A stretch of DNA of 63,816 bases, filler included, from Octopus bimaculoides (lineage: Eukaryota): NCBI RefSeq assembly GCF_001194135.2. It is 5 parts of 5 records of this genome, joined end to end, with 100 filler letters (N's around TTAATTAATTAA, not from the genome) between each part and the next. Parts side by side here need not be neighbours in the genome. Positions count along the whole stretch, not along the records: positions 1 to 28,177 come from NC_068986.1; 4 more parts are not named here. One strand, written 5' to 3'. Below the pieces are notes generated by a model. It saw only the letters and a program-made list of their open reading frames with translations. It was not told the DNA's origin and ran no database searches. Shown here piece after piece: positions 419 through 21,900 of the stretch. The position numbers and the translations under genes were made by a program. Position 1 is the stretch's first letter; the number at the start of each line of letters is the position of its first letter.

Positions 419-480
419 CAACTCTCAGCACTTGGGCGATTTGGTCACGAACCACAACATTTCCAATCCCGAAATAAATG
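419..480 (+). CDS. Candidate upstream exon (phase 2 to 1), NSQHLGDLVTNHNISNPEIN
   Basis: Donor AATG|GTAATA at 480/481 is positionally homologous to donor TTTG|GTAAGC at 3341/3342 in cassette copy 2. The acceptor (ctttag at 418) is a guess. Confidence 0.3.
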
Positions 481-990
481 GTAATAAATATACATGTAAT
501 ATAGGATACAGATTTTAGTGTGGAATAAAAGTTGGAATGTTTGGTAGTTTTCCCAATAAGGAGGTTCATTTTTTTTCAATTTTCAGTTTTTAGTTACTAT
601 GATCTTTTGCGTTTAGTTGTGAAACTTTATTTTGTGGAATGTTTTTCTTTAATATGATATTTAACATGTTTCCATGATTCCAAGAGTAGTAGGAGTCCTG
701 GAGAGTTTTGGACTATATTTTTTTAAAGGGAGCAATTGGTTGCAAACTCCCTTAATGGTTCTGTACAGTTGTTAACATACTCAAAATGAACATCCAAATA
801 TCTATCAGTTTCCTCTTCCATTATAAAAGTATATTATATTATCTTACCTTTTTATCTAGTCGAAAAAACCACAGGAGACTCCTCAGTGGCAAACATAATG
901 TCAACGGCAACAGAAGGTAAATAATATTCTATAAATATTTTACCATTCATTGTCTTGTATACTTGAAATTTATTAAAAATCTAAAGATTT
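470..990 (+). repeat. Duplicated exon-intron cassette, copy 1 (around Y1)
   Basis: Shares long blocks with 3330-3840, e.g. gcgtttagttgtga.actttatttt, gtcctggagagtttt, acatactcaaaatgaacatccaaatatctatcag. Confidence 0.85.
860..916 (+). CDS. Thr/Ser-rich stalk exon Y1 (57 nt, phase 1-1)
   Basis: tttttatctag|TCGAAAAAACC...ACAGAAG|gtaaat; encodes (V)[18 protein letters not shown]. Confidence 0.75.
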
Positions 991-18900: not shown

Positions 18901-21900
18901 GTAAGGCCACCAGATTTATACATCACTAAAAATAAAAATAAAATTAGTTGTTTTAGCTATTAGTGACATGCCATTTAATATTGTGTGTTATCTTCGTTGC
19001 AAGATTCCAGAATCATAAACGAAGGAAGTAGCTCTTAGCATATAGTTAATTATTGAGAATTAGCCCAGATAACCTCTTTAAGAACATATTCAAATGTTTT
19101 CCTTGCTTGATACTAAGCATCTACATGCAGTCTTTTGCATCTCCGTCACTATGCATCTACTTTAGCTATCACAACATCTATTAATGAAGGAACGAATAAT
19201 TATCATCATCACGACCTGTATTGCCTCACCATTTACCTTCATAAAAGTTTCATAGCTGATACCAATAAATTAACCTTACAAATAAATTATGCCATCATTT
19301 ATACATTGTATTGCCAACAATACGAAACTTGGGCTATCTAGACTTAGAATTAAGCAATTACCCCAACACTATTGTTCACTCACTAATCTATCATATATGA
19401 TATGATACATGATATATATATATATATATATATATGTGTGTGTGTGTGTGTGTGTGTGTGTGTGTGTGTGTGTGTGTGTNNNNNNNNNNNNNNNNNNNNN
19501 NNNNNNNNNNNNNNNNNNNNNNNNNNNNNNNNNNNNNNNNNNNNNNNNNNNNNNNNNNNNNNNNNNNNNNNNNNNNNNNNNNNNNNNNNNNNNNNNNNNN
19601 NNNNNNNNNNNNNNNNNNNNNNNNNNNNNNNNNNNNNNNNNNNNNNNNNNNNNNNNNNNNNNNNNNNNNNNNNNNNNNNNNNNNNNNNNNNNNNNNNNNN
19701 NNNNNNNNNNNNNNNNNNNNNNNNNNNNNNNNNNNNNNNNNNNNNNNNNNNNNNNNNNNNNNNNNNNNNNNNNNNNNNNNNNNNNNNNNNNNNNNNNNNN
19801 NNNNNNNNNNNNNNNNNNNNNNNNNNNNNNNNNNNNNNNNNNNNNNNNNNNNNNNNNNNNNNNNNNNNNNNNNNNNNNNNNNNNNNNNNNNNNNNNNNNN
19901 NNNNNNNNNNNNNNNNNNNNNNNNNNNNNNNNNNNNNNNNNNNNNNNNNNNNNNNNNNNNNNNNNNNNNNNNNNNNNNNNNNNNNNNNNNNNNNNNNNNN
20001 NNNNNNNNNNNNNNNNNNNNNNNNNNNNNNNNNNNNNNNNNNNNNNNNNNNNNNNNNNNNNNNNNNNNNNNNNNNNNNNNNNNNNNNNNNNNNNNNNNNN
20101 NNNNNNNNNNNNNNNNNNNNNNNNNNNNNNNNNNNNNNNNNNNNNNNNNNNNNNNNNNNNNNNNNNNNNNNNNNNNNNNNNNNNNNNNNNNNNNNNNNNN
20201 NNNNNNNNNNNNNNNNNNNNNNNNNNNNNNNNNNNNNNNNNNNNNNNNNNNNNNNNNNNNNNNNNNNNNNNNNNNNNNNNTATATATGTAAGTATATATT
20301 ATATTAATAATGAAGGTGTTGAATGATTTTAACACCAGTCTGCAAGAAATAGACCCCAAATGGTCTATGAACCACTTAGATTATTTTAGTGATGAATGAA
20401 GCTGGTGACTATTTCATAATTTCTGCGTGCTAGATCTCACCTTTAATAACCAAACTTAATGTACCGAATTATGTCATATGACAGAGGGACTGCATTATAT
20501 GCTTTTCGTATGACCTAAATCTCACAAAATCTGCGCATACCTGCAGACCATAGATTTGGGAAGTACTCTGGCATTAATCACAATGGAATGAAGTCTGAAG
20601 GAAAATCAGAGCCAGTCTACTAAATATTAGGGTAGAGGGATTGCTCCAAAAGGAACGAGTATGATTTTTTTTTAATCAAAAGCTGCATATCAATAATATA
20701 TCAGTCACAAACGCATAATGTGATATATGCATATTATCTGATTCTTTGAGACAACATAGTTCTAAAGGTTGAATACTGATAAAAGACGTAGAAGCATAAC
20801 TCCACAACGAACAAATCGGTACATCATGCGCGATCCTTCATGAACTCTGTTCACAATTGTACACATTATATTTTCTCCGACAAACAGGTAATTTAACTGC
20901 AACTGAATTTGCCTCCCCGTATTAAGCTAGCGCTTTTGAAAAGAAATATTTTTCCCAAATCTTTATCTATCCCCAAATTATTTACACTTGTATAAAGTAA
21001 AATACAGATTAACATATTGAATTGAAAATCTGATTATTATTATTATTATTATTATTATTGTGTTTTTTGTTTTTTAGATTCTTCCGATTTAATTCTCGGT
21101 CTTAGTATTGGAATTTCTGCGACAGTTATATTTCTTCTCGTGCTTTTGCTTTGTTTCTGGTTTAGATGGAAAAAGCGAAACGCTAAAGGTAGCACGAAAA
21201 CTTTGGATCGGTAAGATGATCAATACCTTTTTGTGTTCCTTCTCTGTTAACGGATGAATATAAACGACGAATATTGCTTAACGTTAATGTTTTGTACACA
21301 GTATAATCACGTTACGTAAGACCTAGAGAGTACTATACTGAACTAATACTGCTTCTGGTGCTAATAATGAATTTTTATCCAAACTGCTGGCCATTTTACT
21401 GCCTATCTGTTGTATTGATTAACCCCCCCCCACCCCATTTTCCTATATCAGTAGAGACCCAAGTTGCCTAAGCATTCGGCTGCTAGTGGATACTTCCTAC
21501 AGATAACCGAACAAACATGCAGAAATCTAAATATAACAATTCAACTGCCACTGCAAGATGTTTTTCTTGTACTTATATACTTCTGCGATTTTAAGTACTA
21601 TACATTTATAAGGGATGCTTTTTCGAGAAAACTACTGCTGTTGAGTGGTTTTCTACAGCATATTCTCGTTAAGTAAGATATACAGAATACTATTTTGAAC
21701 TGATATTCCTTCTGCCGTTAATAACGAATTTTTCACACAGTTTCCCGGCCATTTCTTTTCTACTTTTGGCACAAGGCCCGAAATTTTTGGGGCCAGTCGA
21801 TTAGATCGACCCCAGTATGCAACTGGTACTTAATTTATCGACCCCCGAAAGGATGAAAGGCAAACCTTTCATCCTCGGCAGAGTTTGAACTCAGAACGTA

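Follow-up and report, generated by a model that had tools for sequence, protein, structure and literature searches.

Human MUC16 carries tandem SEA modules and has grown by repeated duplication of multi-exon units with their introns. Vertebrate MUC4 is not known to have a SEA domain. In Muc13 of chicken and zebrafish, each repeat of the proline/threonine/serine-rich (PTS) region is encoded by one exon, and control of length through exon number or alternative splicing has already been proposed (Lang, Hansson and Samuelsson 2006, PMC1552070). In particular, ahead of its SEA domain chicken Muc13 has a true PTS domain made of at least 12 near-identical exons of 20 amino acids (PMC1552070). Here we describe a locus of Octopus bimaculoides in which Thr-rich mini-exons lie on both sides of a single SEA domain. 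The DNA analysed is a joined stretch of 63,816 nt, filler included, and our analysis concerns its positions 1-28,177 (hereafter the window), corresponding to L001:4318-32494 on chromosome CM046606.1. It covers the 3' portion of a plus-strand gene for a MUC4-like membrane mucin, LOC128248076 (gene C).

We think it likely that the window contains the C-terminal half of gene C and that the linker mini-exons of this gene multiplied by duplication of a cassette. In the proposed mechanism, short Thr/Val/Pro-rich linkers would connect the SEA domain with the membrane on one side and with the remaining ectodomain on the other, and they would presumably be O-glycosylated and extended. Each linker segment would correspond to one symmetric phase 1-1 mini-exon of 24-69 nt. 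Tandem segmental duplication would have copied a unit of ~1-3 kb, made of the exon and both intron flanks. The pre-SEA copies are spaced ~2.9-3.4 kb apart. Slippage at a 12-nt (TVPx) unit within the exon would change its length as well. Since every copy has phase 1-1 and a length divisible by 3, adding, losing or skipping one alters the linker length and leaves the frame intact. We infer the O-glycosylation, unequal crossing-over as the mechanism and any regulated skipping.

Mini-exon cassettes on both sides of the SEA exons

Y1 and Y2 are positioned upstream of the three SEA exons (S1, S2 and S3), and Y3 is positioned between the SEA exons and the transmembrane (TM) exon (Table 1). In self-BLAST, positions 512-979 pair with 3383-3844 (75.7% over 482 nt), 3379-3536 with 18472-18631 (74%), and 3760-4387 with 18749-19390 (64.5%). 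In a three-way MAFFT alignment, the homology runs from ~473/3334/18422 through ~1285/4387/19390. The duplicated unit includes introns, as the flanking introns are alignable over 0.4-0.6 kb per side. A fourth copy, copy 0, lies just upstream of the window and contains the exon Y0 (L001:1764-1820); a gap of 1053 N separates it from copy 1. A profile search of the 55.6-kb L001 finds no cassette beyond these four copies.

In every Y exon, the first two bases finish a codon and one extra base remains at the end, which makes the exon phase 1-1. Y1, Y2 and Y3 all have an AG acceptor and an AAG|GTAAAT donor. The Y exons are separate and frame-symmetric, all of the same phase and all multiples of 3 in length, as in an exon-per-repeat organization. 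The lengths of Y1, Y2 and Y3 differ by 12 and 24 nt, and these steps correspond to one, two or three copies of a 12-nt unit, ACAGTGCCAACA. TRF finds 3.2 copies of it at 3736-3774 in Y2 with 85% matches. According to the translations, Thr, Ser and Pro together account for 37% of Y1, 52% of Y2 and 40% of Y3, and Y3 is the membrane-proximal segment that links the SEA domain to the transmembrane helix. Y1, Y2 and Y3 sum to only 57 residues. Therefore, the Y segments are linkers and not a mucin (PTS) domain proper, and the "mucin stalk" of the initial annotation is an overstatement. The rest of its description is reproduced, namely three homologous exon-plus-intron cassettes with copies on both sides of the SEA domain, phase 1-1 exons of 57, 69 and 45 nt that differ by multiples of 12 nt, and a 12-nt repeat in Y2. 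Its proposal of growth by duplication of a symmetric mini-exon with its introns (~0.4-0.6 kb each side) is also upheld, and this growth is recurrent. Copies 0 and 1 are 90% identical and the paralogous gene B has two identical 42-nt Y exons, so the cassette has been duplicated repeatedly. Near copy 0, a second duplicated piece is observed (L001:682-877 versus 2635-2828, 1.95 kb apart). This pair suggests recent duplication of a ~2-kb tandem unit.

The octopus genome is repeat-rich, and the cassette edges in copies 2 and 3 adjoin microsatellites. The cassette might accordingly be a dispersed repeat (a transposable element or a SINE-like element) whose copies are independent insertions that were partly exonised. 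However, a profile search of L001, the gene A locus (L002), the Argonauta locus and the O. vulgaris P0012 locus finds the cassette only beside SEA exons, with four copies in L001, one in L002 and none in the other two, and two more are present in the gene B locus, L003. All copies are on the gene strand, and neither terminal repeats nor a poly-A tail are seen by sequence reading and self-BLAST. In addition, the pre-SEA and post-SEA positions are common to the paralogues and O. sinensis. Since the copies in the loci searched are confined to the neighbourhood of SEA exons, on one strand and at shared positions, we reject this explanation as very improbable.

Even less probable is an assembly artefact in which haplotypes or collapsed repeats were joined in tandem across gaps to give the copies. 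The region is gap-rich, with the gap between copies 0 and 1 as an example, and the cassettes of gene B are near-identical and gap-flanked. However, the copies diverge by 10% (0 versus 1), 24% (1 versus 2) and >30% (2 versus 3), which is probably far above allelic divergence, and their exon lengths are unequal. In addition, Y exons are present in an independent O. sinensis protein, two before the SEA domain and one after it. On these three grounds, the explanation is rejected.

When Y2, S1, S2, S3, Y3, TM and the first tail exon are spliced, they form one open frame. In a protein search, the spliced translation has a single exact match, XP_052824449.1 ("uncharacterized protein LOC128248076"). 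The coding sequence (CDS) of this protein starts at a Met inside S1 and includes Y3. The model has no signal peptide and misses half of the first SEA strand, so it is incomplete and cut short at the 5' end. The Y2-S1 splice is in frame, and its junction, TTE|VYSY, matches the junction TTE|VFSY of gene B in RefSeq proteins.

Six assembly gaps fall in the range 470-19395. All are intronic and no exon is interrupted, so the spliced frame is independent of the gap lengths. Five of the six are located inside TA or TG microsatellites, and the sixth (16514-16849) lies in the middle of an inverted repeat of 94% identity detected by self-BLAST (16070-16513 versus 17131-17576). This repeat resembles a foldback-type element in the S3-Y3 intron, and short related pieces are located at 14249-14298. 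The order S1-S2-S3-Y3-TM, which crosses four gaps, is the same in the RefSeq protein and in the O. sinensis protein P0011; the same exon order is observed in paralogous gene A, where S1, S3, Y3 and TM are recovered. The gap at 1286-1385 shortens cassette copy 1, and copy 0, its near-twin, continues into sequence that is not found past this gap. The gaps at 1286-1385 and 4806-5175 could conceal more sequence or another exon.

The SEA domain is recognized most clearly from the family. A profile of seven family members matches the SEA domain of ADGRF1 (7wxu_R, residues 157-235) with an E value of 3.1e-5. The segment IRNG|SVIVDH at the S2/S3 exon junction is aligned with FRNG|SIV of ADGRF1, and the G and S of the cleavage motif are invariant in the family alignment. 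The domain carries a G|SVIV self-cleavage motif, and cleavage is predicted. In the AlphaFold2 model of an O. sinensis relative of gene B (67% identical), this region adopts the expected beta-alpha-beta-beta-alpha-beta arrangement with a mean pLDDT (predicted local distance difference test score) of 75. The Y segments of the model have low to moderate confidence, with a pLDDT of ~48-68 over 10-residue blocks. The top Foldseek matches include TMPRSS6 (E = 8e-4), MUC16 SEA5 (7sa9_A, TM-score 0.50/0.57) and the mouse protease SEA domain 2e7v, and generic ferredoxin-like folds score similarly to these SEA matches. Profile similarity, a G|S(V/I)(V/I)V motif and the alpha/beta sandwich fold of the relative's model are all features of the Pfam SEA family (PF01390), whose fold spans ~100-120 aa and has the motif between strands 2 and 3.

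Table 1 Coordinates of the genes, cassettes, exons and conserved intron stretches. Positions without prefix are those of the window.
Feature	Position	Strand	Remarks
Gene A, "mucin-4"	84.81-84.86 Mb		L002
Gene B, "mucin-like protein"	84.92-84.97 Mb		L003
Gene C, window gene	CDS 85.05-85.09 Mb	+	L001
Cassette copy 0	L001:894-2188	+	Just upstream of window; ~90% identical to window 1-1285 (~1.3 kb)
Cassette copy 1	473-1285	+	Intron-Y1-intron; ends at gap 1286
Cassette copy 2	3334-4387	+	Self-BLAST and MAFFT
Cassette copy 3	18422-19390	+	Self-BLAST and MAFFT
X1 candidate exon, doubtful as coding	419-480	+	Ends at donor slot GT 481-482; open in phase 2-1
Y1 mini-exon	860-916	+	57 nt, phase 1-1, 19 residues; AG acceptor, AAG|GTAAAT donor
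Z1, 25-nt exon-like piece	1156-1180	+	ACAG|...CAG|GTAAAT; conserved between copies 0 and 1
Y2 mini-exon	3713-3781	+	69 nt, phase 1-1, 23 residues; 12-nt repeat inside
SEA exon S1	5652-5725	+	ATG of annotated CDS (XP_052824449.1) at 5684
SEA exon S2	8087-8148	+	Spliced frame and protein match
SEA exon S3	12528-12679	+	Opens with G|SVIV autoproteolysis motif
Y3 mini-exon	18726-18770	+	45 nt, phase 1-1, 15 residues; present in XP_052824449.1
TM exon	21078-21210	+	Spliced frame and protein match
First cytoplasmic-tail exon	26501-26603	+	Other tail exons beyond window
Conserved downstream-intron stretches	917-976, 3782-3841, 18771-18830	+	First 60 nt after Y donors

Frame retention and sequence divergence of the Y exons

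Six Y exons from three genes are 24, 42, 45, 57, 57 and 69 nt long, all multiples of 3, and the Thr-rich frame is the only frame that is open in all six. Indels are frequent in the flanks, as the initial annotation had noted, and are mostly not multiples of 3 (only 10 of 49 are). The five distinct exon lengths correspond to at least four length changes, and the joint chance that the frame was kept throughout is ~0.01, assuming a one-in-three chance of frame retention per length change. A frame constraint on the Y exons, paralogues included, is supported by these figures.

Several observations weigh against our reading of the locus. First, conservation of the Y exons does not exceed that of the introns around them. 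The identity is 91% in the exon and 88% and 96% in the upstream and downstream flanks between copies 0 and 1, 72% versus 79% and 74% between copies 1 and 2, and 62% versus 67% and 69% between copies 2 and 3. Second, Y0 and Y1 differ in five places, and each difference alters the encoded residue. Third, the steps of 12 and 24 nt within the window come from the copy number of a 12-nt unit and so keep the frame without any need for selection. Fourth, the Y0, Y1, Y2, X1 and Z1 peptides are present in no protein among 5.8 billion, and the model transcript of XP_052824449.1 probably lacks Y1, because Y1 has an in-frame Met upstream and yet the CDS starts in S1. Fifth, P0001 has no precomputed Pfam SEA match, and the SEA region as a single PDB query gives chance matches only. 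Finally, gene C could be a 5'-truncated duplicate, since its N-terminal half is unseen and the ~78 kb upstream, between the end of gene B (84,967,398) and the window start (near 85,046,042), lie outside the sequence covered.

The initial annotation had proposed purifying selection and expected the Y exons to be better conserved than the surrounding intron. Across the six exons, selection is borne out for the frame and the splice sites and not for the sequence, in which the exons do not exceed the introns. The latter result goes against the proposal as it was framed, but the comparison of exon with intron is weak here, because the true SEA exon S3 itself has a dN/dS of 0.80 relative to gene A (0.26 for the TM exon). 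As to the presence of Y exons in transcripts, Y3 is the only Y exon of the window in an annotated protein, and Y0, Y1 and Y2 are in no protein model. Homologous Y exons are present in protein models of O. sinensis, O. vulgaris and gene B of O. bimaculoides, and it is only from homology with gene B that we infer expression of Y0, Y1 and Y2.

The same observations raise the possibility that only Y3 works and that Y0, Y1 and Y2 are silent relics, intact because of their youth, in a truncated duplicate that starts near S1. The start of the RefSeq CDS inside S1 and the absence of Y0, Y1 and Y2 from protein models are consistent with it, as are the equal divergence of copies 0 and 1 in exon and intron, the amino-acid changes at all five exon differences, and the offset-1 frame, which is likewise open in Y0, Y1 and Y2. 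However, a protein that begins in the middle of the first SEA strand without a signal peptide points to an incomplete model. Moreover, Y2, which is ~25-30% diverged from Y1, keeps its AG and GT, polypyrimidine tract, Thr-rich frame and multiple-of-3 length, and the in-frame Y2-S1 junction matches the expressed junction of gene B. We consider silent relics rather unlikely, and favour working linker exons multiplied by cassette duplication.

Within the cassette, conservation across the three paralogous genes peaks in the 60 nt that open the downstream intron, at a level above that of the exon body. The mean pairwise identity is 85%, 77% and 74% in successive 20-nt blocks, and 32-48% further out. 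This 60-nt stretch could be a splicing control element. It is conceivable, if improbable, that the Y mini-exons are a regulated length dial in which the 60 nt after the donor control the number of exons included. Such a dial would tune how far the self-cleaving SEA domain lies from the EGF region and from the membrane, as well as its mechanical coupling to them. It would also permit quick changes of copy number among paralogues and species, as gene A has 0 or 1 copies, gene B 2+1, gene C at least 3+1 and an O. vulgaris gene possibly ~17.

Further exon-like pieces are observed in the cassettes. An upstream donor slot had been reported as GT, GT and AT in copies 1, 2 and 3, and is indeed GT at 481-482, GT at 3342-3343 and AT at 18430-18431; it has no demonstrated meaning. 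Two indels that break the frame, a 1-nt deletion and an 8-nt insertion, distinguish X1 from its copy-0 twin, X0, and no exon matching X1 is found in copy 2. The donor of Z is lost in copies 2 and 3, with an in-frame stop in copy 3, and inclusion of Z1 would break the reading frame. Z1 is probably a relic or a pseudo-exon. We considered X1 and Z1 as true exons of a three-exon unit (Y+Z+X = 144 nt) and rejected this, because of the frame-breaking indels between X0 and X1, the lack of a usable X in copy 2 and the loss of the Z donor in copies 2 and 3.

Paralogues and other octopods

HMMER and word searches tie the C-terminal part to "mucin-4-like" proteins from three Octopus species (O. bimaculoides, O. 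sinensis and O. vulgaris) and from Argonauta. The cluster on the O. bimaculoides chromosome, at 84.81-85.09 Mb, comprises at least three MUC4-like genes in tandem. Genes A and B have NIDO and/or MUC4-type C8-3/VWD domains and EGF modules, and gene C is 58% identical to P0003, a fragment of gene A, in the C-terminal part. In gene A, the exons follow the order of the window, with S1 and S3 ahead of a single Y cassette and then TM. Its Y exon (24 nt, L002:63831) encodes NSTTPTEE and occupies the Y3 position. Just before S1, gene B contains two identical 42-nt Y exons with near-identical flanks, 3 kb apart, which were found via the donor motif and by sequence reading, not by the profile search. 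The gene A "mucin-4" model (P0015) looks faulty in that it ends by reading into the intron after S1, and P0016 of the same cluster looks faulty in that it has a non-homologous end after the first Y exon. The N-terminal PTS repeats of gene A (~37 aa each) are in one continuous exon, L002:10001-10657, which adjoins an 8-kb assembly gap.

The O. sinensis protein P0011, a relative of gene B, reads EGF-Y-Y-S1-S2-S3-Y3(15 aa)-TM in the Thr-rich frame. In the O. vulgaris mucin-4-like protein P0002, the flanks are identical and Y3 is omitted, and the frame is still kept. Because the layout with Y exons before SEA and a Y exon between SEA and TM is common to the paralogues and the O. sinensis and O. 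vulgaris models, it is older than the gene duplications and the split of these species. The count of copies upstream and in relatives that the initial annotation had suggested thus gives copy 0 upstream, cassettes in genes A and B, and Y-Y...Y3 in O. sinensis.

Residues ~860-1295 of P0002 comprise 17 units of 15-31 aa, each ending in DNR(R/S), and the range of the gene is 163 kb. The sequence RKNHRR... in P0002 is comparable to Y1 at offset 1. Apparently, the 17 units are Y-like sequence read one base out of frame. Three annotations could be repaired on this basis: XP_052824449.1 is 5'-truncated, the gene A model runs into an intron, and the O. vulgaris model has apparently mis-framed ~17 Y-like units.

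No cassette homologue is found by profile search at the Argonauta locus (L004), and neither a cassette nor a SEA exon is found at the locus of O. vulgaris P0012 (L005). The pre-SEA segment of Argonauta hians (L004:50437-53508) is instead a 658-aa open reading frame (ORF) with ~89 copies of a 21-nt unit encoding TTTTPDI. This repeat exon is followed by a second repeat array and a 33-nt mini-exon (~53,661-53,693).

The introns of the window contain other features. Decayed ORFs of mobile elements, assigned by eye, are located at 10780-12050 (+), 15280-16000 (+) and 23300-25100 (-). One of them is gag-like, with a CCHC zinc knuckle near 11500-11560, another is Cys-rich (ORF 15630-15995), and the third is a minus-strand reverse-transcriptase fragment (ORF 23926-24576). 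SINE-like short repeats (9859-10026 versus 25782-25942) are 80% identical and inverted. A tRNA-like head sequence is observed at 12815-13130, and tRNA (ARAGORN) and Rfam scans of the window return no matches. Finally, a degenerate (GGT)n-like G/T-rich tract at 2740-3000, with a minus-strand His/Thr/Pro-rich ORF at 2569-3006, is taken to be low-complexity sequence and not a gene.

Comparison with known mucins

The initial annotation had contrasted this locus with vertebrate mucins, in which a single VNTR (variable number of tandem repeats) exon would set the stalk length. This contrast fails on both sides, as Muc13 has one exon per repeat, and gene A and Argonauta have single-exon repeats. Gene C resembles Muc13 in being a transmembrane mucin with a SEA domain and a Thr/Ser/Pro-rich region in small exons. 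However, unlike Muc13, it has few Y exons (three or four before the SEA domain and one after it), which are diverged and of unequal lengths. Also unlike Muc13, the octopus Y exons are located between the SEA domain and the membrane as well, and the family is MUC4-like. In MUC16, the repeat is a whole multi-exon SEA module, whereas the octopus gene repeats a mini-exon linker around a single SEA domain.

In accordance with MUC4 and invertebrate "mucin-4-like" proteins, paralogues A and B combine NIDO, C8-3/VWD and EGF domains with a GDPH motif and a transmembrane helix. At the N-terminus, gene A further contains its PTS repeat domain, in one continuous exon. Unlike vertebrate MUC4, the octopus genes carry an additional SEA domain, with linkers from Thr-rich mini-exons, ahead of the transmembrane helix. 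Pfam SEA (PF01390) is listed for several other invertebrate relatives too. Like the single-exon VNTR mucins (MUC1 and the Argonauta hians relative), the octopus genes have a Thr/Pro-rich, presumably O-glycosylated segment beside the SEA domain, and the 12-nt slippage in Y2 is a miniature of the VNTR process. Unlike Argonauta, with its one repeat ORF, Octopus has separate mini-exons with homologous introns at this position.

The principle is therefore already known from Muc13, and what is new here is the case of a cephalopod MUC4-like cluster. Linker length set by the number of symmetric mini-exons is found in this cluster too, presumably with an independent origin, and within octopods the mini-exon design coexists with the single-exon repeat design that Argonauta has at the corresponding position.

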